Notes under the pieces: generated by a model
What the model saw: the letters and a program-made list of their open reading frames with translations, nothing else
Told to the model about the DNA's origin: nothing
The model's database searches: none
Shown: positions 1 through 28,341 of the stretch, piece after piece
How positions within the stretch are numbered: position 1 is the first letter of the stretch
Layout of the letters: the number at the start of each line of letters is the position of its first letter
Position numbers and translations under genes: made by a program
Assembly (NCBI RefSeq): GCF_032444005.1
Contig: NC_091291.1
Location: 7,998,001-8,062,000, forward strand
Length of the DNA: 64,000 nt
From: Ranitomeya imitator
Taxonomy: Eukaryota
Direction of reading: 5' to 3'

Positions 1-2497
1 CCACCCATCTGCATGAAGAGAGCGGCCATCGATGCCGCCAGCACCTCTGCCAGCAAGAAGCTCAAAGTTGACTGGTGTGATAAACTGAAAATACCGAACT
101 CGCAGGCGTTAACGCAGGCCGTGATCATGAATTACAACTGCGCATTTGAGAAGACGAGAAACACAAGGTACGTGACCGATGGTAAAGCGTTACACTCCAG
201 AGCTGCACTCACTATTCTTCAGGTTTCAGCTCCTGAATACTTTCAGTTGAGGGTTTGTTACCGTGTATCGGTGCAGGTAATCTCCTCCTGGCTTCACTGA
301 TACACTGTAACGAGTCTTCAGCAGGTTTGAGGTATATTTTGCATTCACTACTGGTTTCTTTTACAGACCAAAGCGTAAGATGAGTGAAGCGTTCGTGCAG
401 GAGATTGTGGACCTGGACTTGGTGGATAATGAAGATCCCTTTATGATCATGAATGGGTGAGTCCTGCTGCTCAGGGTCGGGGTTGTGCTGCCTCGGGGTC
501 GGGTCGGGGCCACTTGTTTGGGTCTGAACTTTTATTTTTTTTCACCATGGTTTAGGCTTCTTCTTGACCTCACTGTGGATGTGAAAACCGAATTTCCAAT
601 GTCAGAATCGGCAAGAGAGTCTCCGGTCTCCGATCACGCGGAAGGTAACGGGGAGTGCGGGGTCCCCAATATCCAGCACCGTCCTCTCCTGTAACTGATA
701 AGTCTGGTTCTGGGAAAGCTGGATGACAGGATAGCTGAGGTCATCTCTCTTAGAAGAGTTGTCGCTGCCACCACTTTGCTGGAGTTATTGGGGGTCTTCT
801 GTCTCCATCTTTACAGATTTCTCCCCCAATTTTGACAACTTTGAGGACCGATTTCTGGAGGAGAAGGAGAAACTGTTAGTGAAGAGAGGCAGCCCGCACC
901 TGCGCTTCGAGATCATCAGCGAGGACGGCTTTTACACCCAGTCCGACAGCGCTGAAGGTACGGGCAGCGATGAGACCACCCATAATGCTGAGCTTAAGGG
1001 GGTCCCCAGCCCAGCCCCCTCTTAGACTTCTTCCGCTGTCCATGGCTGAGCAGTGATCTGCTGACTGTTCTGTAATTTTCAGTCACTGACAACTTCCTCC
1101 ATAAATTGCATTGGTGACACCTGCAGGGAGTTGTCAGACCCCGCGCCCCTCCATAGTTTGAGCTGCTGAATAGAGATGGAGGATTTTGGTTTTCAGATTT
1201 GACTTCTTCCCATTCAGATGCGTGGAGGAGGGTGGTGGAGAAGGTGCAGGAGGCGCGAGGTGTCGGGAGGCTCCGGCAGCTGTCATTCTACGGTGAGAGG
1301 GGGTGGTTGTCAGGCTGGGGTCGCCATCATGGGACCAGCGGTGCCCTTTGTACTGAGCGTTCCTCCTCTAGGTCTGAGCGGATCACGGATGCTGGGAGTT
1401 CAGCACGACGCCGTCCTCTTCCTCCTGGAGCAGCTCATCGGAGCCGAGCGCTGCCGCGGGTACAAATTCCTCTTCCATCCGCAGGAGGTAGAGGAGGAAG
1501 AGCTGCTGATCAACGCGTCTGGGTGCGCGCGGAGCGAGTTCTATGTCCGGTACGTGCAGGCGCCGCTGATCTCCCCCATACTTGGTGCGTTGGTCTATTT
1601 AGATTTTTCTCATTTTATATTTTTTCCGGACAGGAAGAGCACATTTGACATGTTCAATTTCCTGGCGTCGCAGCACCGTAACTTGCCGGAGCTGTATGCA
1701 AACGAGGAAGAGGAGGAAGAGGTGCAGCTGAAGTCCACCAGGTACTAGGATGGCGCCGCTCTGCCGGGAAGGGGGTCACTTGTTTTTGTACGCACACCTT
1801 AACCTTTTGAATGCTGTATTTTCAGACGAGCAACGAGTCTGGATCTCCCCATGGCGATGAGGTTCAGGCACCTGAAGAAAACGTCCAAAGAAGCGGTGGG
1901 GGTCTACAGGTAAGTGGGGGTCCGGCTGTCTGCACCACGCGACCTCGCCGTGTCCTGACAGTCTCCTCCTTCAGGTCCGCCATTCACGGCCGGGGGCTGT
2001 TTTGTAAAAGGAACATCGATGCCGGCGAAATGGTCATTGAGTATTCCGGCAACGTGATCCGCGCCGTCCTGACCGACAAGCGGGAGAAGTACTACGATAG
2101 CAAGGTAAAGCAGCAGCGCCAATATGGCGGCTTTCCTGTTTCCTGTCAATGGAAGCATAAATGTTCACGAACGTCGAGAGGATCGCGGCGGCGGAGACTG
2201 ACCCGCTACCTTCTGTTCCAGGGCATCGGCTGTTACATGTTCCGCATCGATGACTTTGACGTGGTGGACGCCACGATGCACGGGAATGCGGCGAGATTCA
2301 TCAACCACTCGTGCGAGCCCAACTGCTACTCCAGGGTGATCCATGTGGAAGGCCAGAAGCACATCGTCATCTTCGCCCTCCGGAGCATTTACCGCGGCGA
2401 GGAGCTGACCTACGACTACAAGTTCCCCATCGAGGATGCCAGCAGCAAGCTGCACTGTAACTGCGGTGCCAAGAAGTGTCGCCGATTCCTCAACTGA
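1..2497 (+). CDS. KMT2B: Histone-lysine N-methyltransferase 2B, 3' part (FYRC, SET, post-SET); 5'-partial
   Basis: GT-AG exons in frame: <1-167 (tentative), 367-456, 556-644, 817-957, 1218-1292, 1372-1549, 1634-1741, 1826-1909, 1975-2104, 2222-2497. FYRC motif [15 protein letters not shown] motifs [10 protein letters not shown]...[13 protein letters not shown]...EELTYDY, post-[11 protein letters not shown]. Residues SAIHG/YSG/DDFDVVD/VIHVEG and synteny with U2AF1L4/PSENEN favour KMT2B over KMT2A. Confidence 0.93.
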
Positions 2498-3187
2498 GGC
2501 CAGCCGGCTGCGGAGGTGCTGGCACTTCCCATGGCGGACCACCACCGAGCCTCCCTGACCGGGCTGAGAAAGATCAATGGTGCTTCTCTCTGCGCAGAGG
2601 CGAGCAGCACTGGAAACCGCACTTTACCCTCTGTCCTGAAGGGCAGCTCCTCTCCTTCCTCTCAGGGTCCTCTCTAGATTCCTCCCTCGCTCGCTGCTGC
2701 TTCCAGGTTGTTGGCCCTCCTCTCCCCCGAATGGCGTCTCACAGCTAGGGGGCAGTAGGTGGTCTCTCTCTTTTTAACCAGTGCTTTTTCTTAGATCACT
2801 CCCATCGGATGATGACCGATCCAAATGTCGGGGAGCCAAGGAACAAACACGAGTTCCTGTTTTTTGGGGGTGACAATCATTTTTTATTCCTTTTGCTGCT
2901 AATGACCTTCCCAGACCTGAAAAGGTTAACGTCCCCCGATTTTCCCATCTGCATTGTATCATGGCGTTCTCTTGATTTTTTTTTTTTCTTTTCTCTCTTC
3001 CGGGGGGACGAGCGGCGATCGTGACGCCGTCCTGAGAATATCAGCTGCGGACGGCGTGCGCAGACTTGTACATACTTGTATAAAGATTTGTAAGGACGGT
3101 GTTTTGTTTTTTTTTTTCTATGCACTTTTTTTTATTTAAGGACTTGCTGGAGAACAATGGTTCATGTCTCACCTGTTTAGCGTTTTA

Positions 3188-9668: not shown

Positions 9669-12600
9669 TTAGAAGCGGCCGTGTCGGTGCCTCGGTGAGC
9701 GCGAGCGGCGGCGGCCACCAGCATCTCTGTTGTTGTGCCGAGGCCTGTCGGGGAAGCGCTTTGGCGAGTGATGTCTGGGCGGAGATCCGGCCCTGGCCCT
9801 GTAATGGAGAACACGTACAGAGGCGTGAGGTCACGAATTAGGTTATCTGCAACAAATCTCAGAATTATCTGCCGAATCCTGCGACTGGGGAGCAATCCTG
9901 ACCACAGGGTCCAAAGACATCGGCCATCAATAATCCCAGGAGTACGTGCACACTAAGGCATCAGAAGTGAAACACACAAGTTTTTGAGGGGGGACTTGGA
10001 AGAGTTTTTATAAAAAAAACAAAAACAACCCCAAACCTCAGTGTGCACGTAGCCTTAAAGGGGTTGTCTACATCCGCTCGCTCACACATTGACATTAACC
10101 CCTTCCTCATGTGTGACATTACACCCTACGTTCAGTCCTTAGGCATCTGCACTGGGCAATCATTGTGCTGGTATCGCAGGGTGCTGATGGGGGTGGTTGT
10201 TATGGCAGGCGGGGTCCTGGGGATCAGCAGCTGATTACATAAAAGGTGTTACCCCCAAATGTATATTAGTTTTCCAGCCACATGACCTCGGGAGACAACA
10301 GGTGCCAGCCATGACGTGTTGTGTATCTGCCCTGTTGACCAGAATCTGACGTGCGCACGTCCAGGCAGGCGCTTGCCAACACCATCATCAGTGACTCTCA
10401 CCGCCCGATGAATGGAGAGGCACCGGGGAGCCCTCTAAGGGCAGGGAGGAAAATAGACTTTCCCTGCTATGATGTGTCCTTTTAGGGATCTCCCCACAAA
10501 GATGGTCGGGGGACCCCTCGCAGCCAGTGACCGTATATAGGAGCTCCGCTCCCATCTATCCGCAGACGTCCATCACACAGGACGGAGCCTCGGGTCCATC
10601 CAGGTACTCACTGTCGGTTACGGGCTCGGCCGTACAGCTGCCTCCGGAGCGCGCTGGAGATCGGCTTCAAATGCATAAAGTTGCAGAATCCGCCGCGGTT
10701 ACATTCACTGTCGGGGGAGAGAAGGACAAAACGTTACGGGTCAGAACGTCGGAGGTGAAGCAGGAGACTCGAGGAGCTGGCGGCACTCACCCCATCTCAT
10801 ACTGCCGGCAGCAGGACTCCCTGAAGTCTGTGACCGGCGACAGCTCGGCGTGGATCGCCTGCCCGTTGAACCAGCGGTTGTTCAGCTCCACCAGGGCACG
10901 TTCTGCGTCTTCCTCTCGGCGAAACTGTCAGATAAAAAAAAAAAGGGCGAAAGAATCAATGAAGGAGCGAAGTGAGGAACTGTGGGAAATAGAAGAGGTG
11001 GACGAGCGTCACCTCCCCGCCGGCAGCTTAATATAGCCGTGCCTAATCCGGTTTATGGTAAATAGGATTGGACACCGAGATCTGGGGCAGATGGACGAAG
11101 GAGACGCTGGACACAAACAGGTACTGAAGCCCCCGAATACAAATCGCTGATATATAGAATATATAATGCTAGTAGTGGGGGGCACACACATACCGTATAC
11201 ACTGACCAGGGGTGGGGGGCACACTGGACACAGGGAATATACACCCCGACCAGGGGCGGCTACAGGCCTTCAAGGAAACTGACTAGTCCCAGCCCATCAC
11301 TGACACTCAGACCCGCCAACAGGACCCCCCACTATTGCCAGAAGCCGTTATTCCTGTCTACATGCCACCATACATATACATTTCTCTTATACCCACAGGC
11401 TCAATGACACGGACAGAATATCAGTGCGGTGTTCACACTCCACCATTGCCCAACTCCACAGTCAGCATCACAATGGCCGATGCGGAGGGCTGCGACACAG
11501 ACAAAGGAGGCGGCCGGGAAGCTAACGGGCTGCGTTCTGGAATGGGGCAGCCCCCCAAGCAAGTTCTGGTTTTCCTTCCCCGACCCGCCACAGACACCGG
11601 TCGGTACCGAAGCTTTCCCCAGAAGGTGAGAAGCCTAAAATATTACAAAGCGAGAGACCTCAGAAATCCTACAAGATCATAAATGTTAATTGTCTCTCTC
11701 TGCAGCCAGAATGTGTGGTGGCACCAACATGTGCAGCAGAGCCGATAGCACCGCCGGCCTCTCCGCTGACACTCCCAGATATAATGCCACGCAGCGCCTA
11801 CAAACGTCACGTGAGCACTGCCGCCGTCGGACATTCCTACCCGATGCTGCCGCGACAAAGCGTCTGCATATCGGAGGATCTTCCCAAGTACCGCCGATCG
11901 TCCCTGAGAGATGGCGGAGCAGCCAGCGCTCGCTGGTACCCTCAGCAAGCCACCAGTGTGCCCGATATCACCCATGAACCTCGATACATTAACATTCAAC
12001 CACGTGGGTCGTTTTCTGCCCCCCTGACAGGACCCGAGCGACCGGCTAAACAACGGCGTAAGCTGATGGAAGCAGAACTCCACCAAGGCAAGACATCCAC
12101 CCGGCGGGAGCGGCAGAGGTACGTGGCCAAAGATGGCAAGTGCCAGGTCAACTTGGGCCGCATTCACGAAAAGGCTCGTTTCCTATCGGACATTTTCACC
12201 ACGATCGTGGACCTGAAGTACCGCTGGTTCTTGTTCGTCTTCATGATGTGCTACGTCGTCACGTGGCTGCTCTTCGCCACCATCTACTACCTGGACGCGC
12301 TCTTGCGCCAAGATTTGCTCCACCCGGATGACAAGAACTGGGCTCCTTGCTTCCAGAACGTGGACAGCTTCACAGCAGCGCTCCTCTTCTCCGTAGAAAC
12401 CCAGCGCACCATTGGCTACGGCTCCCGAATGGTGACCACCAACTGCCAGGAAGGCGTCTATCTCATAATGGCCCAGTCCATCGTGGGCTCCATGATCGAT
12501 GCCCTCATGGTGGGCTGCATGTTTGTCAAGATCTCGCGACCAAAGAAACGCGCGCAGACGCTGATCTTCAGCCGGAACTGCGTGGTCTGCCCGCGAGATG

Positions 12601-15600
12601 AAAAGCTTTGTCTCATGTTCCGCATCGGCGACCTCCGGGACAGCCACATGGTGGACGCCAAAATAAGGGCCAAGCTCATCAAGTCACGGCAGACGTGCGA
12701 AGGGGAATTCCTTCCTCTGGAGCAGTCAGAGATCAACCTCGGCTACGACACCGGAGAAGACCGACTGTTCCTGGTGGAGCCGCAGGTCATCTGCCACCTG
12801 ATCGACCACCATAGCCCCTTCTGGGAGATGGGGCCGCAGGAGCTGCTTCAGGAGCAATTCGAGATCATCGTCATATTGGAGGGGATCGTGGAGGCCACAG
12901 GCAAGTAGACAACCCCCCTCATGTGTCCCCCAATACAACCCTGCCCTCTGGGGTGTATGCATTATATATAGCGACCCCCCAACATCCAGCTCAGTCTCCA
13001 AACTGGGCAACAACTCGTTTTAACCCTCCCACTAGATCAGAACGGTAACCCCCATTACTGCAGGCAAGTTTATATTCACAGGTTATTGGGGGTGTTATTC
13101 ATATAGACATATTCCTGAAAGATACCACCAACTATGGTTTAAAGGGGTTGTCCGGGGCGACCATTTTGAGGAACCATCCTCCGGATAGGTCATCAATATC
13201 ATACGGGTGGAAGTCTGGTGGTCTGTACACCGTGTTTTCTGTACTGCTGTCGCAGCAACGGGCACTACACAGGGTATGAGATGGTGTTTTTCGAGTATCA
13301 TGTGACCCCTAACAGGAGATTGGTGGGAGCATCTGGTTCCTGACCCCTACTGATCTGATGTGGATGATCCATCACAATAACAGGCCATCAATATCATCCC
13401 CTTTAAATGATCCCAATGTAGATCACCATTGAGATCTCTGAGGGTCAGTTCAGGGGCCCCAGTATTGTAGTTGTACTTTGTTAGGACCCCCCCGTTTCAC
13501 ACGAATCCTTCTCCCTATCCCATCGCAGGGATGACTTGTCAAGCGAAAAGCTCCTACTTGGAAAATGAGATCATCTGGGGCCATCGCTTCGAGCCCTGCA
13601 TGACCCTGGAGAAGGGGGCCTTCCGGGTGGACTACAAGCGCTTCCACAAGACGTTCGAGGTTCAGCTTCCTCGCTGCAGCGCTAAGGAGATGGAGGAGAT
13701 AAAGGAGCTGGAGGGCTCGGAGGTCAGCTTCTACTGGGAGAACGGAGACTTCTTAACCGGCCGCAGACACACGATGACGGACAAGGGCGACGACGAGGAA
13801 GATGAGGAAACCCGGGAGGAACGCAGCGGAAGACTCATCGGAAACATCACCGAAGAGCACAGCTCCGAGTTCAACGGCAGCGACTACAACCTGTGAGTCA
13901 CCCTCCCCAGCGACGAACGCTCGGCGTCAGTAATTACATAGGGTGTAATGAGCGCAGCTCCGCTATAGACCGGGCTGCGCTATGTAGATTGTGAGCAGCA
14001 GAGGACGGAGACACCGCCGCGGACTGCGATATACATGGACTGGTTAGCATCAAAAGGAAAAATAAAGAATATTTTTTAATTAACTCTTAAATTTCTAGCA
14101 GGAGTGCAGTGTAGATCCCGACATCAACATTTGTGCAGCAGAATCTGGGGGTGTCCCATGCCACAGCGCTCACTAGGTCCCTTACTTTTTTTTTGTATTG
14201 GGTCTCCACCGTCCCATTTGCATGCCTAGTCCCCCCTCCAGTCCCTTCCCAAGCAGCAGCGAGACGTTACCTTGACGTAGACGTTTCCCACCAGGTGATC
14301 GCCGAGGTTGTCGCAGATATTCATCTCCTCGATCTCTCCGTATTTCTGCTCCACTTCGGTGAACACTTCCTGCGAGAGTGGAGAAATAATCAGACAAGGT
14401 CACGAAGCTGCAACTCCCCTGGCTTATACAGATAGTCGCTGACCGGACATGCTGGGAGCAGTAGTGTCACCAGCCTTAGATTACATGCACACACAAAGGC
14501 TTTTTCAGGCTGTTCTACTGTGTAACCTGCCTGAAAACGCGCATTAAAAAAAAAAAATGCTAAAAAAAATGGACATGTGCACTGCGACGTAAGAACGGCC
14601 CGCTGCTCATATGTCCAGGCTTCCAGTGAATAAGTGATCGGACCGATGTTCAGGCGGCTTCAGACCCCAATAGTTTATGATTAACACTAGGACTACTGGT
14701 ATAGTGATTTTGACTACTTACTTGCAGTAGTTCTAGTCAGGGTTCACGAGTCCAGTAGTCCTAGTGTTAAAAAACCCAAAACAATGAAAAGTTGCCGGCA
14801 TGCCCACAGGAGTCCTCCTCAGCCATAACTCAGTGGGTATAAAGCCTTAAGAAGGTCCCACTCACCTCAAAGAAGTCATCGTAATGTTCCTGCACCTCCA
14901 CATCACTGACGAGCGCTGCTTAAGAGAGAAGAGATGGAAATCATTGTCACTGCACACAAGGGGACGACACACCCAGAGACTACACAGATGGACGACCATC
15001 ACCGATCTATCCACAGGATAATTAATATTGGGAGACCCCTTTAAGAGTCAGGCCTGCAGAATATAAACTAAGTGACCCCCAGTTAGTGGGGTAGATGCAA
15101 CACTATTCTGCTTGTCCCTCGTAGTCGTGGCTGCAATTGCCCCCTCTACGTCAGCATTATTGGAGCCCACGTGGTCGGTCCCAGCCGCATTGGTTGCTGG
15201 GAGAGGCAATTCTTGTGGCCCCTTTCAGAGCAGGTACATTAGTATTATGATGGCGGGACTCACAGTGGGAGCCGTTGGCGCTCTGTGCCGTGTTCTGCGG
15301 GTTCCGGTAAAGGTTCAAGAGGACGATCGTCTGAAAGACAAAACTAAACAGTCAGCCGAGAAGATGCATTGTGTCTGAAATCACATCCTTATGCCGATGA
15401 GGGGCCAGAATGCCCCCGCTACCTCATCTTAAGGCACTACTTATTAAAGGGGAAGTCTATACACACTATTGCTGGGGTCCTAAAATGAAGCAACCACTGC
15501 GCTGTGTAAGACGCCCGAGCTCCTTTGTTGCTGCTCGGAGCTTTCTGAGTCCTGGGATTGTTCTTCATTCTGACCGACGTCTTCACTGTCGAGGGGGAAT

Positions 15601-18600
15601 CTCAGCTCAAATGTGACCGGATGTTACCAAACAAAGACCCCAAAACTACCACAGATGCCACCCTGCTATATACAGGTCCTTCTCAAAAAATTAGCATATA
15701 GTGTTAAATTTCATTATTTACCATAATGTAATGATTACAATTAAACTTTCATATATTATAGATTCATTATCCACCAACTGAAATTTGTCAGGTCTTTTAT
15801 TGTTTTAATACTGATGATTTTGGAATACAACTCCTGATAACCCAAAAAACCTGTCTCAAAAAATTAGCATATCAAGAAAAGGTTCTCTAAACGACCTATT
15901 ACCCTAATCTTCTGAATCAACTAATTAACTCTAAACACATGCAAAAGATACCTGAGGCTTTTATAAACTCCCTGCCTGGTTCATAACTCAAAACCCCCAT
16001 CATGGGTAAGACTAGCGACCTGACAGATGTCAAGAAGGCCATCATTGACACCCTCAAGCAAGAGGGTAAGACCCAGAAAGAAATTTCTCAACAAATAGGC
16101 TGTTCCCAGAGTGCTGTATCAAGGCACCTCAATGGTAAGTCTGTTGGAAGGAAACAATGTGGCAGAAAACGCTGTACAACGAGAAGAGGAGACCGGACCC
16201 TGAGGAAGATTGTGGAGAAGGAGCGATTCCAGACCTTGGGGAACCTGAGGAAGCAGTGGACTGAGTCTGGTGTGGAAACATCCAGAGCCACCGTGCACAG
16301 GCGTGTGCAGGAAATGGGCTACAGGTGCCGCATTCCCCAGGTAAAGCCACTTTTGAACCATAAACAGCGGCAGAGGCGCCTGACCTGGGCTACAGAGAAG
16401 CAGCACTGGACTGGTGCTAAGTGGTCCCAAGTACTTTTTTCTGATGAAAGCAAATTTTGCATGTCATTCGGAAATCAAGGTGCCAGAGTCTGGAGGAAGA
16501 CTGGGGAGAAGGAAATGCCAAAATGCCTGAAGTCCAGTGTCAAGTACCCACAGTCAGTGATGGTGTGGGGTGCCATGTCAGCTGCTGGTGTTGGTCCACT
16601 GTGTTTCATCAAGGGCAGGGTCAATGCAGCTAGCTATCAGGAGATTTTGGAGCACTTCATGCTTCCATCGGCTGAAATGCTTTATGGAGATGAAGATTTC
16701 ATTTTTCAGCACGACCTGGCACCTGCTCACAGTGCCAAAACCACTGGTAAATGGTTTACTGACCATGGTATTACTGTGCTCAATTGGCCTGCCAACTCTC
16801 CTGACCTGAACCCCATAGAGAATCTGTGGGATATTGTGAAGAGAAAGTTGAGAGACGCAAGACCCAACACTCTGGATGAGCTTAAGGCCGCTATTGAAGC
16901 ATCCTGGGCCTCCATAACATCTCAGCAGTGTCACAGGCTGATTGCCTCCATGCCACGCCGCATTGAAGCAGTCATTTCTGCCAAAGGATTCCCCACCAAG
17001 TATTGAGTGCATAACTGAACATTATTATTTGATGGGTTTTTTGTTTGTTATTAAAAAACACTTTTATTTGATTGGATGGGTGAAATATGCTAATTTATTG
17101 AGACAGGTTTTTTGGGTTATCAGGAGTTGTATGCCAAAATCATCAGTATTAAAACAATAAAAGACCTGACAAATTTCAGTTGGTGGATAATGAATCTATA
17201 ATATATGAAAGTTTAATTGTAATCATTACATTATGGGAAATAATGAAATTTAACACTATATGCTAATTTTTTGAGAAGGACCTGTACAACCCTGACTAAT
17301 ACACTGCTAAGTATGCATGAAAGTGATCACATGATCTCAGCCGCCCCACGATGCACAGAGCGTCCGCAGGTCGTCCGACCTGAACATCACAACCTCAGGA
17401 GGAGACCTGGGACCGATCCGTAATCGGGTGAGTGAGACCGACCTCAGAAGAGCAGAGATTTCTGAATTTTAGAGTTTTTAATTTTAAATGTACTATAGAG
17501 ACACCTATAGAAACCCACCACATATATAGCACCCCCCCCCCCCCAAATTCAGGGGGATTGTCCAGGTATGAGAGCAGGGTCCGCAATCACTGTCAAACCG
17601 GCGGTAACACCAGCCACCGTCACACCGGCAGTCACATGGCGGCACGCCTGCCACCGTCACACCGGCGGTCACATGGCGGCACGCCTGCCACCGTCACACC
17701 GGCGGTCACACGGCGGCACGCTTGCCACCGTCACACCGGCGGTCACACGGCGGCACGCTTGCCACCGTCACACCGGCGGTCACATGGCGGCACGCCTGCC
17801 ACCGTCACACCGGCGGTCACACGGCGGCACGCTTGCCACCGTCACACCGGCGGTCACACGGCGGCACGCTTGCCACCGTCACACCGGCGGTCACACGGCG
17901 GCACGCTGACTGGATGCAATAAATTTCTTTCCAGTCTGTTCTATAGGATGAAGCCAGAGGAGAAATTCACCCAGTAAAGCATTGGACGCCACGATTATGA
18001 CCCCATAATAGTCAGTAGGGTCCATCAGGTGCATCTGTGATATCTGTTGCCTAGGAACAAACACAAAGCCTAATTCCCTGCTGCAGACATGACTGGAGCC
18101 TAAAGCCCCAATGTGGGGGGCCGCATGGTGAGGTCGGGGAGAGAAGGATCAGATGTCTCCAATCTCTGAGTGACGATCCTGCTGCTCTCCAGGAGACAAG
18201 AAATGTCCGTTGTTGGCTCTCGTACAGAACACAGGAGCCGAGCGATCGCTTGACTGCTATCTGCTGTGTATGGGGCCCGCAGGTCACCTCCAGAAGAAAG
18301 TGTGCGGCCCCCAGGGTCCTCACCTGGCTGAAGGTGGGTTTGTTGTGGAGGCGGGAACAGCGGTCTCCGTGGCGACACGCTCCGATCTTGAAGTAAAAGG
18401 AACAGTTGACCCTGAAGAACAGACAAAGGGGAGACGGTTATAAAAAGGCCCAAATATCCAACTAATCCATCACTGGCCACAACACACAGGCGCTCCATAT
18501 ACTGAGTCTTGTCCTGGGCCCCGTGTCATCAGTGGCCTCTCTGTAGCCCACTCCCTCGCTCCTCAGGGGCCCCGTGCCAGCAGTGGCCCCCGTGCAGCTC

Positions 18601-21600
18601 ATTCTTGCCCTCCTCTGGGGTCCCGTGTCCTCAGTGGCCTCTCTGTAGCCCACTCTCTCCCTCCTCAGGGCCCCGTGTCATCAGTGGCCCCTCTGTAGCC
18701 CACTCTCTCCCTCCTCAGGGCCCCGTGTCATCAGTGGCCCCTCTGTAGCCCACTCTCTCCCTTCTCAGGGCCACGTGCCATCAGTGGCCCCTCTGTAGGC
18801 CGCTCTCTCCCTTCTCAGGGCCCCGTGCCATCAGTGGCCCCTCTGTAGGCCGCTCCCTCCCTCCTCCGGGGCCCCGTGTCATCAGTGGCCCCTCTGTAGC
18901 CCACTCTCTCCCTTCTCAGGGCCCCGTGTCATCAGTGGCCCCTCTGTAGCCCACTTTCTCCCTCCTCTGGGGTCCCGTGCCATCAGTGGCCCCTCTGTAG
19001 GCCGCTCCCTCCCTCCTCAGGGGCCCCGTGCCATCAGTGGCCCCTCTGTAGCCCACTCTCTCCCTCCTCTGGGGTCCCGTGTCCTCAGTGGCCCCTCTGT
19101 AGCCCACTCTCTCCCTCCTCCGGGGTCCCGTGTCCTCAGTGGCCCCTCTGTAGCCCACTCTCTCCCTCCTCTGGGGTCCCGTGTCATCAGTGGCCCCTCT
19201 GTAGCCCACTCTCTCCCTCCTCCGGGGCCCCGTGTCCTCAGTGGCCCCTCTGTAGCCCACTCTCTCCCTCCTCCGGGGCCCCGTGTCCTCAGTGGCCCCT
19301 CTGTAGCCCACTCTCTCCCTCCTCTGGGGTCCCGTGTCATCAGTGGCCCCTCTGTAGCCCACTCTCTCCCTCCTCAGGGGTCCCGTGTTCTCAGTGGCCC
19401 CTCTGTAGGCCGCTCCCTCCCTCCTCCGGGGTCCCGTGTCATCAGTGGCCCCTCTGTAGCCCACTCTCTCCCTCCTCAGGGGTCCCGTGTTCTCAGTGGC
19501 CCCTCTGTAGGCCGCTCCCTCCCTCCTCCGGGGCCCCGTGTCATCAGTGGCCCCCGTGCAGCTCATTCTCGCCGCCCTCCGGGCTCCCGTGCACTAAGTG
19601 GCCCCCGTGCAGCTCACTCTCGCCCACAGTGGCCCCTCTGCAGCCCACTCTCGCCCTCCTCTGGGGTCCCGTGTCATCAGTGGCCCCTCTGTAGCCCACT
19701 CTCTCCCTCCTCCGGGGCCCCGTGTCATCAGTGGCCCCTCTGTAGCCCACTCTCTCCCTCCTCAGGGGTCCCGTGTCATCAGTGGCCCCTCTGTAGCCCA
19801 CTCTCTCCCTCCTCAGGGGTCCCGTGTCCTCAGTGGCCCCTCTGTAGCCCACTCTCTCCCTCCTCAGGGGTCCCGTGTCCTCAGTGGCCCCTCTGTAGGC
19901 CGCTCCCTCCCTCCTCAGGGGTCCCGTGTCATCAGTGGCCCCTCTGTAGCCCACTCTCTCCCTCCTCAGGGGTCCCGTGTCATCAGTGGCCCCTCTGTAG
20001 CCCACTCTCTCCCTCCTCTGGGGTCCCGTGTCATCAGTGGCCCCTCTGTAGCCCACTCTCTCCCTCCTCAGGGGTCCCGTGTCATCAGTGGCCCCTCTGT
20101 AGCCCACTCTCTCCCTCCTCAGGGGTCCCTTGTCCTCAGTGGCCCCTCTGTAGCCCACTCTCTCCCTCCTCTGGGGTCCCGTGTCATCAGTGGCCCCTCT
20201 GTAGCCCACTCTCTCCCTCCTCAGGGGTCCCGTGTCATCAGTGGCCCCTCTGTAGCCCACTCTCTCCCTCCTCAGGGGTCCCGTGTCCTCAGTGGCCCCT
20301 CTGTAGCCCACTCTCTCCCTCCTCAGGGGTCCAGTGTCATTAGTGGCCCCTCTGTAGCCCACTCTCTCCCTCCTCAGGGGTCCCGTGTCCTCAGTGGCCC
20401 CTCTGTAGCCCACTCTCTCCCTCCTCAGGGGTCCCGTGTCCTCAGTGGCCCCTCTGTAGGCCGCTCCCTCCCTCCTCAGGGGTCCCGTGTCCTCAGTGGC
20501 CCCTCTGTAGGCCGCTCCCTCCCTCCTCAGGGGTCCCGTGTCCTCAGTGGCTCCTCTGTAGGCCGCTCCCTCCCTCCTCAGTGGCCCCTCTGTAGCCCAC
20601 TCTCTCCCTCCTCAGGGGTCCCGTGTCCTCAGTGGCCCCTCTGTAGGCCGCTCCCTCCCTCCTCAGGGGTCCCGTGTCCTCAGTGGCCCCTCTGTAGGCC
20701 GCTCCCTCCCTCCTCAGGGGTCCCGTGTCCTCAGTGGCCCCTCTGTAGGCCGCTCCCTCCCTCCTCAGGGGTCCCGTGTCCTCAGTGGCCCCTCTGTAGC
20801 CCACTCTCTCCCTTCTCAGGGGTCCCGTGTCCTCAGTGGCCCCTCTGTAGGCCGCTCCCTCCCTCCTCAGGGGTCCCGTGTCATCAGTGGCCCCTCTGTA
20901 GCCCGCTCTCTCCCTGCTCAGGGGTCCCGTGCCATCAGTGGCCCCTCTGTAGCCCACTCTCTCCCTCCTCCGGGGCCCCGTGTTCTCAGTGGCCCCTCTG
21001 TAGCCCACTCTCTCCCTCCTCAGGGGTCCCGTGTTCTCAGTGGCCCCTCTGTAGCCCACTCTCTCCCTCCTCTGGGGTCCCGTGTCATCAGTGGCCCCTC
21101 TGTAGCCCACTCTCTCCCTCCTCTGGGGTCCCGTGTCATCAGTGGCCCCTCTGTAGCCCGCTCTCTCCCTCCTCAGGGGTCCCGTGCCATCAGTGGCCCC
21201 TCTGTAGCCCACTCTCTCCCTCCTCCGGGGCCCCGTGTTCTCAGTGGCCCCTCTGTAGCCCACTCTCTCCCTCCTCAGGGGTCCCGTGTTCTCAGTGGCC
21301 CCTCTGTAGCCCACTCTCTCCCTCCTCAGGGGTCCCGTGTCCTCAGTGGCCCCTCTGTAGGCCGCTCCCTCCCTCCTCCGGGGCCCCGTGTCATCAGTGG
21401 CCCCTCTGTAGGCCGCTCCCTCCCTCCTCCGGGGTCCCGTGTCATCAGTGGCCCCTCTGTAGCCCGCTCTCTCCCTCCTCTGGGGTCCCGTGTCATCAGT
21501 GGCCCCTCTGTAGCCCACTCTCTCCCTCCTCAGGGGTCCCGTGTCATCAGTGGCCCCTCTGTAGCCCACTCTCTCCCTCCTCAGGGGTCCCGTGTCCTCA

Positions 21601-23611
21601 GTGGCCCCTCTGTAGCCCACTCTCTCCCTCCTCAGGGGTCCCGTGTCCTCAGTGGCCCCTCTGTAGGCCGCTCCCTCCCTCCTCAGGGGTCCCGTGTCCT
21701 CAGTGGCCCCTCTGTAGGCCGCTCCCTCCCTCCTCCGGGGCCCCGTGTCATCAGTGGCCCCTCTGTAGCCCACTCTCTCCCTCCTCAGGGGTCCCGTGTC
21801 CTCAGTGGCCCCTCTGTAGGCCGCTCCCTCCCTCCTCAGGGGTCCCGTGTCCTCAGTGGCCCCTCTGTAGCCCACTCTCTCCCTCCTCAGGGGTCCCGTG
21901 CCATCAGTGGCCCCTCTGTAGCCCACTCTCTCCCTCCTCAGGGGTCCCGTGCCATCAGTGGCCCCTCTGTAGCCCACTCTCTCCCTCCTCAGGGGTCCCG
22001 TGTCCTCAGTGGCCCCTCTGTAGGCCGCTCCCTCCCTCCTCAGGGGTCCCGTGTCCTCAGTGGCCCCTCTGTAGCCCACTCTCTCCCTCCTCAGGGGTCC
22101 CGTGCCATCAGTGGCCCCTCTGTAGCCCACTCTCTCCCTCCTCCGGGGCCCCGTGTTCTCAGTGGCCCCTCTGTAGCCCACTCTCTCCCTCCTCAGGGGT
22201 CCCGTGTTCTCAGTGGCCCCTCTGTAGCCCACTCTCTCCCTCCTCAGGGGTCCCGTGTCCTCAGTGGCCCCTCTGTAGGCCGCTCCCTCCCTCCTCCGGG
22301 GCCCCGTGTCATCAGTGGCCCCTCTGTAGGCCGCTCCCTCCCTCCTCCGGGGTCCCGTGTCATCAGTGGCCCCTCTGTAGCCCACTCTCTCCCTCCTCAG
22401 GGGTCCCGTGTCATCAGTGGCCCCTCTGTAGCCCACTCTCTCCCTCCTCTGGGGTCCCGTGTCATCAGTGGCCCCTCTGTAGCCCACTCTCTCCCTCCTC
22501 TGGGGTCCCGTGTCATCAGTGGCCCCTCTGTAGCCCACTCTCTCCCTCCTCAGGGGTCCCGTGTCATCAGTGGCCCCTCTGTAGCCCACTCTCTCCCTCC
22601 TCTGGGGTCCCGTGTCATCAGTGGCCCCTCTGTAGCCCACTCTCTCCCTCCTCAGGGGTCCCGTGTCCTCAGTGGCCCCTCTGTAGCCCACTCTCTCCCT
22701 CCTCAGGGGCCCCGTGTCATCAGTGGCCCCTCTGTAGGCCGCTCCCTCCCTCCTCAGGGGCCCCGTGTCATCAGTGGCCCCTCTGTAGGCCGCTCCCTCC
22801 CTCCTCCGGGGCCCCGTGTCCTCAGTGGCCCCTCTGTAGGCCGCTCCCTCCCTCCTCCGGGGCCCCGTGTCCTCAGTGGCCCCTCTGTAGCCCACTCTCT
22901 CCCTCCTCAGGGGCCCCGTGTCATCAGTGGCCCCTCTGTAGGCCGCTCCCTCCCTCCTCAGGGGTCCCGTGTCCTCAGTGGCCCCTCTGTAGGCCGCTCC
23001 CTCCCTCCTCAGGGGTCCCGTGTCCTCAGTGGCCCCTCTGTAGGCCACTCTCTCCCTCCTCAGGGGTCCCGTGTCCTCAGTGGCCCCTCTGTAGGCCGCT
23101 CTCTCCCTCCTCAGGGGTCCCGTGTCCTCAGTGGCCCCTCTGTAGGCCGCTCCCTCCCTCCTCAGGGGTCCCGTGTCCTCAGTGGCCCCTCTGTAGGCCA
23201 CTCTCTCCCTCCTCAGGGGTCCCGTGTCCTCAGTGGCCCCTCTGTAGGCCGCTCCCTCCCTCCTCAGGGGTCCCGTGTCCTCAGTGGCCCCTCTGTAGCC
23301 CACTCTCTCCCTCCTCAGGGGTCCCGTGTCCTCAGTGGCCCCTCTGTAGCCCACTCTCTCCCTCCTCAGGGGTCCCGTGTCCTCAGTGGCCCCTCTGTAG
23401 GCCGCTCCCTCCCTCCTCCGGGGCCCCGTGTCATCAGTGGCCCCGTGCAGCTCATTCTCGCCCTCCTCCGGGCTCCCGTGCACTAAGTGGCCCCCGTGCA
23501 GCTCACTCTCGCCCCCAGTGGCCCCTCTGCAGCCCACTCTCGCCCTCCTCTGGGGCCCCATGCTTACTTATCCTTCTCAGTCCCGAAAATCGAGGCCAAG
23601 TATTCCGCCAT
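9669..23611 (-). CDS. U2AF1L4: Splicing factor U2AF 26/35-kDa subunit-like, 235 aa
   Basis: Eight exons: 23568-23611, 18324-18411, 15264-15330, 14866-14915, 14271-14369, 10791-10924, 10612-10707, 9669-9798. Translation [33 protein letters not shown]...[15 protein letters not shown]...CCRQYEM...RHGRF. The first six exon sizes (44/88/67/50/99/134) match the U2AF1 family; head-to-head with PSENEN as in human. Confidence 0.93.
11404..13896 (+). CDS. Inward-rectifier K+ channel, Kir3/GIRK-like, nested in U2AF1L4 intron 5
   Basis: Exons 11404-11625 (tentative first coding exon), 11706-12900, 13529-13896. Motifs [28 protein letters not shown] filter, [29 protein letters not shown]|MTCQAKSSY. An intron at ATG|MTCQ is typical of Kir3 genes, whereas Kir2 coding regions are intronless. 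AATAAA at 14061-14066. Confidence 0.9.
13139..13406. mobile_element. T2/Kolobok-type MITE
   Basis: TTAA-AGGGG...CCCCT-TTAA termini. Similar half-ends occur at ~10055, ~15040, ~40470 and ~43140. Confidence 0.6.
14681..14770. mobile_element. Tiny TTAA-flanked MITE (piggyBac-like ends)
   Basis: Perfect 19-bp inverted repeat TTAACACTAGGACTACTGG (14681-14699) / CCAGTAGTCCTAGTGTTAA (14752-14770). Confidence 0.6.
15673..17284 (+). mobile_element. Full-length Tc1 DNA transposon (IR/DR type) in U2AF1L4 intron 2
   Basis: TA target duplication (15671-72, 17285-86). 199-bp TIRs (15673-15871, 17086-17284) with ~3 mismatches, each with inner and outer TCTCAAAAAATTAGCATA direct repeats. Confidence 0.96.
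16002..17006 (+). CDS. Tc1 transposase, 334 aa, DD34E
   Basis: Uninterrupted ORF with an HTH N-terminus, GRKR motif, [16 protein letters not shown] and [11 protein letters not shown]; 34 residues between the second D and E. Confidence 0.95.
   Translation: MGKTSDLTDVKKAIIDTLKQEGKTQKEISQQIGCSQSAVSRHLNGKSVGRKQCGRKRCTTRRGDRTLRKIVEKERFQTLGNLRKQWTESGVETSRATVHRRVQEMGYRCRIPQVKPLLNHKQRQRRLTWATEKQHWTGAKWSQVLFSDESKFCMSFGNQGARVWRKTGEKEMPKCLKSSVKYPQSVMVWGAMSAAGVGPLCFIKGRVNAASYQEILEHFMLPSAEMLYGDEDFIFQHDLAPAHSAKTTGKWFTDHGITVLNWPANSPDLNPIENLWDIVKRKLRDARPNTLDELKAAIEASWASITSQQCHRLIASMPRRIEAVISAKGFPTKY
17600..17906. repeat. GC-rich minisatellite, 37 bp unit, ~8 copies
   Basis: Unit GCCACCGTCACACCGGCGGTCACAYGGCGGCACGCYT. 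Confidence 0.9.
18510..23558. repeat. 51-bp minisatellite (~99 copies) filling U2AF1L4 intron 1
   Basis: Unit CAGTGGCCCCTCTGTAGCCCACTCTCTCCCTCCTCAGGGGTCCCGTGTCCT. It explains the 1397-aa and 1005-aa repetitive ORFs. Confidence 0.95.
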
Positions 23612-24682: not shown

Positions 24683-25620
24683 CCCATGCGCTCCTCCGAT
24701 GCTGCAGAATGTGATCAACAATGTGATCAACAGCTCAACCGTGCTGCCGGCCACAAACCATCAGTCATCAGAGGCACAGTTCTCCTCCAGCAAGCAGGAG
24801 GCAGAGGAGCAGTGCGCTTACAATCTGTTTATTATAGAGTTTACAAACGCTGTTCTGAAGATCCGGCCGGCTTCTGGGCCCCTGCGCTCCTCCGATACTG
24901 CAACAGTGTCAGGACCAGGTTAACCGTGCTGCCGGCCACAAACCATCAGTCATCAGAATCAGAGTTCTCCAGCAAGCAGGAGGCAGAGGAGCAGAGCGCT
25001 TACAAACTGTTTATTATAGAGTTTACAAACGCTGTTCTGAAGATCCAGCCGGCTTCTGGGCCCCTGCGATCCTCCGATACTGCAACAGTGTCCGGACCAG
25101 GTCAACCGTGCTGCCAGCCAAAACCGTCAGTCATCAGAGACACAGTTCTCCAACAAGCAGGAGGCAGAGGAGCAGTGCGCTTACAATGTTTATTATAGAC
25201 TTTATAAACGCTGTTCTGAAGATCCGGACAGCTTCTGGGCCCCTGCGCTCCTCCGATACTGCAACAGTGTCCGGACCCGGTTAACTGTGCTGCCGGCCAC
25301 AAACCATCAGTTATCAAAGGCACAGTTCTCCAGCAAGCAGGAGGCAGAGGAGCAGTGAGCTTACAATGTTTATTATAGACTTTATAAACGCTGTTCTGAA
25401 GATCCGGCCGGTTTCTGGGCCCCTGCGCTCCTCCGATACTGCAACAGTGTCCGGACCAGGTTAACCATGCTGCCGGCCACAAACCGTCAGTCATCAAAGG
25501 CACAGTTCTCCAGCAAGCAGGAGGCAGAGGAGCAGTGCGCTTACAATCTATTATAGAGTTTATAAACGCTGTTCAGGAGATCTGGCCGGCTTCTGGGTCC
25601 CTGCGCTCCTCCGATACTGC
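24683..25620. repeat. ~180-185 bp tandem repeat, ~5 copies, PSENEN 5' intron
   Basis: The motif CCCCTGCGCTCCTCCGATACTGCAACAGTG recurs about every 180 bp. Confidence 0.88.
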
Positions 25621-26567
25621 AGAGGTAAAGCTGCTGTTGCAGGTTCAGAGCGCGCACAGTTCGGACCAATGGTGCAGCCATGCCGACAGCTCGTCAGTGG
25701 ACCACTAGAATTCAGCCCATCGGCGGGCGCCCAGAACACACAGCATTAGATCTCGTTATGATGGATGCATTTTGGCATCCCCTTTACAGCTGTACGGTTT
25801 CTGAGAAGAGGAGAGAGGTTGATATTGTTGACAGTTCCCCTTAAAGGGCTGGGATATCTGCCCGATGCACCTGTCGACGGGCTGCGTCCTGGGGGCCGCT
25901 GGCGGCATTGCTGCACCATTGGCCCGAATTGTGGTCGTCTACTTTCTATTGCATCCTCCAACTTCCTCCAATTCTATCTGATACATTTCGCCAGACTGAT
26001 CTTGACAGTGGAGATGAGTATCGATGACAGAAGGGTTAATCCCGCAGGCGCGCTGTGCCCGAGATTCTCCGACATTGAACCGTATCTTAAACATTGCCAA
26101 ATACGGCCCTGGGAAGAACGGGGGACCGAGCGGCAAATACCTCAGTGCACAGACGCGGCCTCTTCCTCATCCACTCTGCGCTAAATCATTACCGGCCTTT
26201 CATATCTGGGTGGTCTCAGACGCTTTTAACCCCTTGTGTCTCAGGTCCATTATTGCAGGCGACGCTGAGGAATATTCAGATCTATTTCTCGGAGATGAAC
26301 TTCTACCGGCCACCACCCGGCTTCTACAAGCCCAAAGGCACGAGAGACGGCCTTATTATGGCTGGACAGTTCGAGATTTCAGTTTATGAACCAGGTGGCT
26401 CAGGATGAGCAGTTTGTACCGAATCCTGAGGCATCATGGACTTGTGGGAGGCCCAGCAGAAATAGAATACAAATCTGTATAGATATAAGTGCCCATGTTC
26501 TCATCTCTTCCCTTTAGAGGCGACATCGTGACCAAACGTGTGAAGATCCGATCTCTCCGACAGCACA

Positions 26568-28341
26568 ATGAACCTGGAGCGCGTCCCCAACGAGGAGAAG
26601 CTGCAGCTGTGCCGAAAATATTACCTGGGTGAGATCAAAGCTGCACAATACACAAGTCTATACGTTTTCCTGGTGGCCTTTGGTTTACTGTTCAGTCCCC
26701 GGCTGCCGGAGGTTGAGGGTCTAGTCTTCGGCGGCCGGAGGTTGAGCGTCCCGTCCCCTGTGGCCAGAGAGTGAGGGTCCAGTCCCTGGCAGCTGAAGGT
26801 TGAGGGTCTAGTTCCCGGCAGCCGGAGGTTGAGCGTCCAGTCCCAGGTGGCTGGAGGGTGAGCGTCTAGTCCCCAGTGGCCGGAGGTTGACCGTCCAGTC
26901 CCTGGCGGCCAGCAGGTAAGTGTCCTGTAGCTGGAGGTTGAGCGTCAAGTCCCCGGCTGCCGAAGGTTGAGGGTTCAGTCCTGTAGCTGGAGGTTGAGCG
27001 TCCAGTCCCCAGCAGCCTTAGGTTGAGTGTCCAGTAGTTGGAAGTTGAGGGTCCAGTCCCCGGCGGCCAGAGGTTGAGCGTCCAGTAGCCGGCGCCCGGA
27101 GGTTAAGCGTCCAGTCTCCGGCAGCTAGAGGTTGAGAGTCTAGTCCCTGGCGGCCGGAGGTTGAGGGTCCAGTCTCCGGCGGCCAGAGGTTGAGCGTCCA
27201 GTAGCCGGCCGCCGGAAGTTGAGAGTCCAGTCTCCGGTGGCTGGAGGTTGAGAGTCTAGTCTCCGGCGGCCAGAGGTTGAGCGTCCAGTCCCCGGCGGCC
27301 GGAGGTTGAGGGTCCAGTAGCTGGAGGTTGAGCATCCGATGGCCGGAAGTTGAGCGGCCAGAGGTTGAGCGTTCAGTCCCCGGCGGCCGGAGGTTGAGCG
27401 TCCAGAAGCCGGCGGCCGGAAGTTGAGGGTCCAGTCCCCGGTGGCCAGAGGTTGAGGGTCCAGTCTCCGGTGGCTGAGGTTGAGAGTCTAGTCTCCGGCG
27501 GCCGGAAGTTGAGAGTCCAGTCCCCGGTGGCCGGAGGTTAAGCGTCCAGTCACCGGCAGCTGGAGGTTGAGGGTATAGTCCCTGGCGGCCGGAGGTTGAG
27601 GGTCCAGTCTCCGGTGGCTGGAGGTTGAGAGTCTAGTCTCCGGCGGCCAGAGGTTGAGCGTCCAGTCCCTGGCGGCCGGAGGTTGAGCGTCCAGTTCTTG
27701 GTGCTTGGTCCTCTTTGTCCTGGGACCAGGTGTCAGGTGGTCTATTCTCTGCTTTCTCCCCTTGGCACCATCACATGCCTCCAGCGGGGTCCTGGTACTG
27801 ACGGACACTGTTAACCCTTTCACCTTGTCTCTGCAGGGGGCTTTGCTCTGCTGCCGTTCCTGTGGCTCGTTAACGTCACGTGGTTCTTTAAGGAAGCGTT
27901 CTTGAAGCCGGAGTACACGGAGCAGCCGCAGATCCAGAGCTGTGAGTGTCGGGCTGTGACCATAAGGGGGCTGTTTTTTAGTAACTATTTCCTGGGGGTC
28001 CATTATCGCTCCCCCAGATGTTGTCACTTCACTTTTGAATGAGCGGCAAATCCTCTGATGTATCCAGTAATATTAAGGAATTGCGGAATGATTAGGTAGA
28101 TGCACCATCCAGGACCCTGGGGGGCCGGTGTTCACTCCTGCGGGGGGTTTAGTGTTGGCTGTACTGGTGGTCTCCCCGCTTATCCTCTGTTCCCCCTGCA
28201 GATGTGAAGCGCTCGGCCTTTGGCCTCATGGTGTGGGTGGCCATCCTCACCACATGGATCAGCATCTACCAGACACATCGGGCCAGCTGGGGCGCCACCG
28301 GTGACTACCTGTCCTTCACTATACCCCTGGGCATCCCCTGA
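26568..28341 (+). CDS. PSENEN: Gamma-secretase subunit PEN-2, 101 aa
   Basis: Exons 26568-26628, 27837-27941, 28202-28341: [33 protein letters not shown]...[18 protein letters not shown] at 28486-28491. Confidence 0.97.
26700..27700. repeat. Degenerate ~21-29 bp minisatellite inside the first coding intron of PSENEN
   Basis: Recurring GGCCGGAGGTTGAGCGTCCAGTCCCCGGC variants. Confidence 0.85.

Follow-up and report, generated by a model that had tools for sequence, protein, structure and literature searches.

A probable Kir3-type potassium channel gene lying antisense in intron 5 of U2AF1L4 in Ranitomeya imitator

Introduction

The physiology of G protein-activated inward rectifier potassium channels (GIRK, Kir3) rests on four mammalian subunits. 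This report concerns a Kir3-type gene of the frog Ranitomeya imitator, located on the plus strand within intron 5 of the minus-strand splicing-factor gene U2AF1L4 (assembly GCF_032444005.1, contig NC_091291.1, positions 7,998,001-8,062,000; this whole stretch of 64,000 nucleotides is the window, and Ranitomeya coordinates refer to it). One gene comparable to it is KCNJ5/9L, located between USP28 and UBE4A/ATP5L; orthologues occur in chicken, lizard and frog, and mammals have lost it (Lovell et al. 2013, PMC3711925). Two unnamed putative GIRKs of 603 and 486 residues, absent in human, were tabulated on chromosome 7 of Xenopus tropicalis (Rangel-Garcia et al. 2021, PMC8016131, Table 1), with no name, function, synteny or nesting given for them in that paper. 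The same authors described kcnj1 nested inside kcnj5 in Xenopus and chicken, a nest that arose as the host gained new upstream exons (PMC8016131). Among solved structures, the relevant one is GIRK2 (Kir3.2, KCNJ6; PDB 3SYA and 4KFM).

Like KCNJ5/9L, the window gene appears to belong to a third Kir3 lineage that was lost in mammals and encodes a protein of about 600 residues, and the two share an N-terminal LAYLPRPPTDTxRYxxFPQK exon, the pore sequence E(T/S)QRTIGYG and an intron after EATG. They differ in position and history: KCNJ5/9L is the paralogue here called B, which adjoins USP28 and UBE4A/ATP5L in birds and ZW10 in X. laevis, is not nested and is kept in sauropsids, whereas the window gene (paralogue A) lies beside KMT2B and PSENEN, is nested in U2AF1L4, is absent from amniotes and evolves faster. 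The two unnamed X. tropicalis sequences are very probably A and B; in X. laevis the A and B proteins are encoded on one chromosome. No nest is visible in Xenopus because the host gene is gone there. With GIRK2 the window protein shares the fold family, the TIGYG filter, the lysines that bind phosphatidylinositol 4,5-bisphosphate (PIP2), the aspartate of the Na+ site and the F192 gate, but it is assigned to a different Kir3 lineage, carries an N-terminal extension of about 190 residues and has Q/R in place of E/T before TIGYG and D in place of N at the M2 site. The kcnj1/kcnj5 pair is likewise a vertebrate opposite-strand host-guest nest involving a Kir gene, although its host is another Kir gene and the host in the window is an unrelated housekeeping splicing-factor gene.

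The gene family is known but unnamed, and both window genes are already annotated. What is new is the placement of the gene as the KMT2B-linked paralogue of the third Kir3 lineage, a corrected model of the gene, an age for the nest and the reciprocal losses of host and guest. A literature search returned no publication relevantly linking KCNJ genes with U2AF1L4.

Results and Discussion

Structure of the channel gene

The reading that we favor, and regard as highly probable with respect to both identity and architecture, is that of an ordinary host-guest pair, a Kir3-type gene lying antisense in intron 5 of U2AF1L4. The intron would hold a complete and functional plus-strand gene encoding a 594-residue subunit of an inward-rectifier K+ channel, with the following parts (nt, nucleotides).

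10979-11121, plus strand: possible 5' exon of the channel gene, probably 5' untranslated region; weak, with donor CAG/GTACTG at 11121/2 and acceptor at 11398
11404-11625, plus strand: channel coding exon 1 (MTRTEY..., 74 codons); open frame, donor GTGAGA; missing from the NCBI model of 494 residues
11626-11705, plus strand: channel intron 1, 80 nt, phase 0, GT..AG, required to hold the frame
11706-12900, plus strand: main coding exon of the channel (N-terminal extension, M1, pore, M2, first cytoplasmic part), ending ..EAT+G
13529-13896, plus strand: last coding exon of the channel, (G)MTCQAK...DYNL and stop codon; IRK_C positions 113-173
14061-14066, plus strand: AATAAA, putative poly(A) signal of the channel gene as read from the sequence, 205 nt before host exon 5

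When joined, 11404-11625, 11706-12900 and 13529-13896 give an open frame of 594 codons. The second coding intron is of the GC-AG type (donor GCAAGT at 12901), and the channel gene as a whole fills about 93% of intron 5. A sequence-only reading of the window had described a complete, intact gene in intron 5 with an AATAAA at 14061, which stands for the coding sequence and the AATAAA; its model needs correction in that the coding start lies further upstream, at 11404, than one would judge from the large open reading frame, and the second intron is GC-AG.

The large plus-strand open reading frame matches, at 100% identity, a 494-residue R. imitator protein in NCBI ('G protein-activated inward rectifier potassium channel 3-like'), the model of which starts at the methionine at 11784. 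Because exon 1 is conserved across relatives, this model is probably short at its N-terminus. The identity over exon 1 amounts to 85% with Phyllobates and about 60% with the N-termini of X. laevis, Ascaphus and Pleurodeles; the gar protein likewise begins MTRKDF..GVHTPPL, the motif LPRPPTDTxRYxxFPQK is common to paralogues A and B, and the FPQK/GT donor of exon 1 is kept in Xenopus, Nanorana, Ascaphus, Mantella and paralogue B. As for the possible 5' exon, its sole support is the alignment of 10979-11121 to the first 48 residues of a Phyllobates model (86%), with no RNA joint.

A retrocopy origin of the channel gene is ruled out, as its introns stand at positions shared with paralogue B. At the main intron, the GC donor (G/GCAAGT) is found at 12901-12906 of the window and in X. 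laevis (contig L001, 12007-12012); Nanorana, Ascaphus, Mantella, teleosts and paralogue B have a GT donor there. The GC donor of Ranitomeya and X. laevis arose either independently or via an old polymorphism. In intron 1 of the channel gene of Mantella aurantiaca (contig L009, 10240-12661), the end of coding exon 1 and its donor (..SFPQK/GTAAGC or GTGAGC) recur as four degenerate tandem copies; these copies end at 10862, 11201, 11580 and 12661, and several of them have stop codons.

The host gene and its splicing across the channel gene

The host gene is read from the minus strand as follows.

23568-23611, minus strand: U2AF1L4 exon 1, coding part; from sequence
18324-18411, minus strand: U2AF1L4 exon 2, first CCCH finger; from sequence
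15264-15330, minus strand: U2AF1L4 exon 3; joint 14915 to 15264, and a loose contig end at 15333 reads on into exon-2 sequence
14866-14915, minus strand: U2AF1L4 exon 4; joints 14368/9 to 14865/6 and 14915 to 15264
14271-14369, minus strand: U2AF1L4 exon 5 (..GNVYVK); donor GTAACG, RNA joints, counterpart found in Ascaphus
10925-14270, minus strand: U2AF1L4 intron 5, 3,346 nt; joint 10924 to 14271, CT..AC, in four of four RNA runs
10791-10924, minus strand: U2AF1L4 exon 6 (FRREED..); tail of RRM_1, preceded by a T-rich tract and CAG, RNA joints
10611-10707, minus strand: U2AF1L4 exon 7, second CCCH finger; joints 10707 to 10791 and 9797 to 10611
9669-9797, minus strand: U2AF1L4 exon 8, coding part, short RS-like tail; the stop codon ends at 9669

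The eight coding exons encode an intact U2AF35-type protein of 235 residues with the domain order zf-CCCH / UHM-RRM / zf-CCCH. The joint between exons 5 and 6 (10924 to 14271, skipping 3346 nt; CT..AC, that is GT..AG on the minus strand) was observed in Logan contigs of all four R. imitator RNA libraries, and the other joints present in these contigs (9797 to 10611, 10707 to 10791, 14368/9 to 14865/6 and 14915 to 15264) are CT..AC as well; depth at the U2AF1L4 joints is 97-298. Because the gene sits between KMT2B and PSENEN, which we take to be the position of human U2AF1L4 (19q13.12), we accept it as the orthologue of U2AF1L4 (U2AF26), an assignment made by synteny. The sequence-only reading had named the same host, placed its exons 5 and 6 on either side of the channel gene and called the host gene intact; the gene order, the coordinates with the RNA joint and the rebuilt frame of all eight exons bear this out, and the contrary outcome that it had envisaged, in which exons 5 and 6 are not joined across the interval, is contradicted by all four runs.

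Phylogenetic placement of the channel

The predicted protein has the domain content of a Kir channel, with Pfam matches to IRK (PF01007, 1e-55) followed by IRK_C (PF17655), the latter split between the main exon (9e-46) and the last exon (2e-20). The K+ selectivity filter T-I-G-Y-G is present (ETQRTIGYG, 12395-12421), as is TIGYG in all aligned sequences of A and B. The closest solved structures are GIRK2 (368 bits), then Kir2 (about 295) and Kir6.2 (about 250), and identity to GIRK2 is about 75% in the cytoplasmic beta-sheet region. Homologue searches returned non-mammalian proteins of about 600 residues automatically named GIRK3-like, GIRK4-like or 'KCNJ5 partial', with no mammal among the matches listed in two such searches.

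For the phylogeny, the outgroups were 50%-identity representatives named via cluster look-up (GIRK2, GIRK3, GIRK4-like and GIRK1), and Kir3 was set against four more distant unnamed Kir representatives. The tree contains no mammalian KCNJ5 or KCNJ3, and one GIRK4-like representative nests among the GIRK2 sequences; the order within GIRK2/3/4 is not reliable. In the careful IQ-TREE analysis, Kir3 as a whole (GIRK1, GIRK2/3/4 and a third lineage) is supported at 100/100 with the window protein inside it, GIRK1 groups with GIRK2/3/4 (96/93), and the third lineage, which holds the window gene, has a support of 100/99 and a stem of 0.53. Within this lineage, clade A (100/100; stem 0.17, faster-evolving) comprises the amphibian orthologues, coelacanth, gar and teleosts, including a sequence named si:ch211-113j13.2 (zebrafish-derived). 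The sequences termed B come from sauropsids, a second amphibian gene, a second coelacanth gene, lungfish, sturgeon and teleosts. A quick IQ-TREE and a FastTree of 223 family members agree with the careful tree.

By its sequence, the window gene belongs neither to GIRK1 nor to GIRK2/3/4 and is placed in a third lineage of Kir3 with two ancient paralogues, A and B. Its membership in A follows from its position within clade A and from its location in the KMT2B-PSENEN interval. Weighing against this picture, the B sequences do not come out as a clade and the shark sequences are unplaced, leaving an unresolved comb; moreover, the lack of any amniote in clade A and of any mammal in the third lineage among the 223 family members refers to annotated proteins and to the best 120 matches listed. 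With this scope, the trees agree with the sequence-only reading, which had called the gene Kir3-like and a GIRK-related paralogue retained in fish and amphibians but lost in mammals, and had proposed such a phylogeny as a check.

The split between A and B predates bony vertebrates, because coelacanth, teleosts and amphibians each have both. Human UBE4A and ATP5L presumably adjoin KMT2A; A and B are likely products of the vertebrate genome duplications, because UBE4A/ATP5L mark the B side and A adjoins KMT2B. Paralogue A appears to have been kept in ray-finned fish, coelacanth and amphibians and not in amniotes, and B in sauropsids, amphibians and fish.

The possibility that the gene is an orthologue of KCNJ9 (GIRK3) or KCNJ5 (GIRK4), as the NCBI names hint, was rejected, as it lies outside the GIRK2/3/4 clade (99/95) and the KMT2B/PSENEN synteny differs (KCNJ5 synteny from PMC8016131). 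Xenopus GIRK5/XIR is also ruled out as its identity, being the KCNJ5 orthologue (PMC8016131). The names 'GIRK3-like' and 'GIRK4-like', as well as the 494-residue Ranitomeya model, are misleading and correctable.

Selective constraint and predicted channel properties

The ratio of nonsynonymous to synonymous substitution rates (dN/dS) was estimated pairwise by the Nei-Gojobori method between Ranitomeya, X. laevis, Nanorana, Ascaphus and Mantella, with many dS values saturated. Overall it ranges from 0.05 to 0.08, and the N-terminal extension gives 0.06-0.15; pairs that include Ranitomeya give 0.07-0.08, and the least saturated pair, Nanorana-Mantella, has a dN of 0.045 and a dS of 0.65 (ratio 0.069). 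The window protein is 87-89% identical to that of Phyllobates. These ratios are far from the value near 1 that the sequence-only reading had named as a refuting outcome.

In an alignment numbered after GIRK2, with the first G of GYG as residue 156, the window protein conserves T154-G158, F192, K64, K194, K199, K200 and D228. The roles of these residues (PIP2 binding for K64, K194, K199 and K200, the Na+ site for D228 and the gate for F192) are those that we take to hold from the GIRK2 structures. The PIP2-site lysines and D228 are kept across A and B, and the changes that set the whole lineage apart from GIRK2 are E152Q, T153R, N184D and E236D. These features would suit a Kir3 channel that is sensitive to PIP2 and Na+ and rectifies strongly; the subunit would form PIP2- and Na+-dependent, G-beta-gamma-gated, strongly rectifying tetramers, and the conserved N-terminal extension of about 190 residues may be regulatory.

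The ETQRTIGYG signature (12395-12430), with an R just before the filter threonine, is invariant in both paralogues from teleosts to birds and is not frog-specific; the D at the M2 rectification site is likewise lineage-wide. This strongly constrained lineage, kept in most non-mammalian vertebrates and having its own pore signature, a Kir2-like rectification residue and a conserved N-terminal extension, would make a cheap target for oocyte electrophysiology.

History of the nest

An opposite-strand U2AF gene spans the channel gene in Pleurodeles waltl (host of 232 residues, channel gene of 3.2 kb), in Bombina bombina (channel gene of 2.6 kb) and in Ascaphus truei. In the last species (contig L008), the channel coding exons (12898-15612) lie between host exon 5 (17468-17367) and host exon 6 (9414-9274), so that the same intron 5 is occupied. 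Inspection of this intron in other species, which the sequence-only reading had suggested, hence finds a same-intron nest in Ascaphus and a spanning U2AF gene in Bombina and Pleurodeles. Because these three species have it, the nest predates the frog-salamander split. The arrangement is roughly 300 million years old.

The arrangement is not universal among frogs. Searches by tblastn and sensitive blastn within 10 kb on either side of the channel gene found no host exon in the gap-free X. laevis contig L001 (KMT2B - channel - PEN-2), save for a relic of exon 2, and none in the gap-free Mantella contig L009; the same searches retrieve eight of eight host exons in Ascaphus at 80-88% nucleotide identity. 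The X. laevis relic (L001, 15920-15825, minus strand: FKTGAHEHRDRRSRLHPEPISSQ) is the sole host trace there. It has the expected place and orientation, 2.5 kb past the channel stop codon, and its zinc-finger cysteines are lost or replaced. In two A-type contigs of teleosts, no U2AF exon was found in flanks of 0.7-2.9 kb, which are too short to judge nesting in fish; the A-type Logan contigs of teleosts are genomic, their open reading frames stopping at the EATG donor.

Mammals keep the host gene U2AF1L4. In at least two frog lineages (X. laevis and Mantella) the guest has survived the loss of the host; in mammals it is the host that has survived the loss of the guest. The nest, kept in Ascaphus, Bombina, Ranitomeya and Pleurodeles, appears to have dissolved later in two ways, by loss of the host in X. 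laevis and Mantella and by loss of the guest in amniotes, and U2AF1L4 is apparently dispensable in some frogs. It offers a dated case with several lineages for asking whether host-guest pairs are neutral or antagonistic. The size of the guest gene is 2.6-3.3 kb in nested species versus 9.8-13.3 kb for paralogue B, which hints, in a small sample, that the host intron limits guest size.

Alternative explanations

As an ordinary host-guest pair, the two genes would most likely run from independent promoters, the host being strongly expressed and cleanly spliced over the guest and the guest probably restricted to certain tissues. Several observations count against this interpretation. Neither of the spliced channel joints (11625 to 11706 and 12900 to 13529) was found in the Logan contigs of the four R. 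imitator RNA libraries; the channel region has a depth of 2-10 in these libraries, and the contigs run unspliced through both channel introns (e.g. 10899-12541, 12517-14210, 11561-11838 and 13444-13959). The word shares of the channel exon alone (0.26-0.30) equal those of the whole stretch (0.24-0.32) in three of the four runs, with no exon enrichment, and the low-depth coverage looks like host pre-mRNA or DNA. Containment in intron 5 holds for the coding sequence and the AATAAA only, so that the channel transcript may overlap host exon 5 or 6. In Nanorana, no host exons were found, but the assembly has gaps at the expected places of exons 5 and 6, and this species is not counted as a host loss. 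As to function, G-beta-gamma gating is presumed from family membership only, and the pore has Kir2-like and lineage-specific residues (Q at GIRK2 position 152, R at 153 and D at 184). The lack of spliced channel RNA in the four libraries, together with a main intron donor that is GC and not GT, would suit a silent relic en route to pseudogenisation in R. imitator, as in amniotes. We consider this very improbable in view of the open 594-codon frame, the intact acceptor sites, the close identity to Phyllobates and the low dN/dS of the Ranitomeya pairs; besides, AG/GCAAGT is a standard functional GC donor, and X. laevis has the same one. Hardly more credible is a host that is U2AF1 (U2AF35) itself and not U2AF1L4: the encoded protein is very near the U2AF35 consensus and has an RS-like tail, but the gene lies between KMT2B and PSENEN, where the human U2AF1L4 is taken to be.

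The ordinary-pair interpretation can also be questioned with regard to the independence of the two genes and the gating of the channel. Antisense channel transcription or chromatin might modulate U2AF1L4 splicing or elongation (e.g. whether exons 6 and 7 are included), or host transcription might gate the channel, the nest being kept by selection; the sequence-only reading had raised coupling to, or interference with, host splicing. Such coupling would fit a guest that fills most of the intron and has a promoter that must be no more than a few hundred nt away from host exons 6 and 7, the age of the arrangement (same intron in Ascaphus, U2AF-spanned in Bombina and Pleurodeles) and a guest of only 2.6-3.3 kb even in a giant-genome salamander. 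However, the idea is weakened because the channel is equally constrained without the host, being intact at the same dN/dS in X. laevis and Mantella, and because the host is cleanly spliced with the guest present, its mRNA being abundant and cleanly joined over the guest in four of four runs; amniotes, in addition, lost the guest while mammals keep the host, and we judge coupling to be quite unlikely. A more far-reaching scenario, speculative and still on the unlikely side, is that the nest, at least about 300 million years old, possibly dates from the genome duplications that made KMT2A and KMT2B, that the two genes interfere, and that lineages repeatedly resolve this through the loss of one of the two, pipid and ranoid frogs having dropped the host and amniotes the guest. 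The channel would then represent a distinct third G-protein-gated class, never sampled by mammalian physiology, in which the pore resembles that of Kir2 and the long N-terminus is regulatory. The alternative to which we give some weight, while doubting it, is that the protein is not G-protein gated at all and acts as a constitutive, strongly rectifying Kir2-like channel or a modulatory subunit derived from the Kir3 stem. Its pore helix reads ETQ, as in Kir2, and not ETE; it has D at the rectification site of Kir2.1 D172 and GIRK1 D173, where GIRK2/3 have N; a lineage-specific R directly precedes TIGYG; and the lineage stem is long (0.53-0.99 substitutions per site). Yet the protein falls with Kir3 in the tree (100/100) and has a higher score against GIRK2 (368 bits) than against Kir2 (about 295), it has the GIRK Na+-site aspartate (which GIRK1 itself is without) and all four PIP2 lysines, and the cytoplasmic beta-sheet region is the one about 75% identical to GIRK2.

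Gene order and other features of the window

The host gene is flanked by two plus-strand genes.

1359-2512, plus strand: KMT2B 3' end (FYRC/SET exons), the SET domain ending near 2512
26568-28341, plus strand: PSENEN, three coding exons

The order KMT2B - U2AF(-) - PSENEN is of the 19q13.12 type. KMT2B is located upstream of the channel gene in Ranitomeya, X. laevis, Nanorana and Mantella, and in the first three of these PEN-2 follows downstream. The NCBI annotation already has both nested genes, with a minus-strand zf-CCCH/RRM gene of 236 residues spanning the channel gene.

Host intron 1 consists almost entirely of a 5-kb minisatellite (18516-23514) with a 51-nt unit, about 98 copies, an 88% match, a G+C content of 64-67% and a strong strand skew. 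Further tandem arrays are located at 17613-17907 (37 nt x 8) and 24737-25621 (180 nt x 4.9). In host intron 4, a piece of about 90 nt (14681-14770) reaches an RNA contig depth of up to about 260 and is continued on either side in many different ways; apparently it is a short interspersed repeat found in many transcripts.

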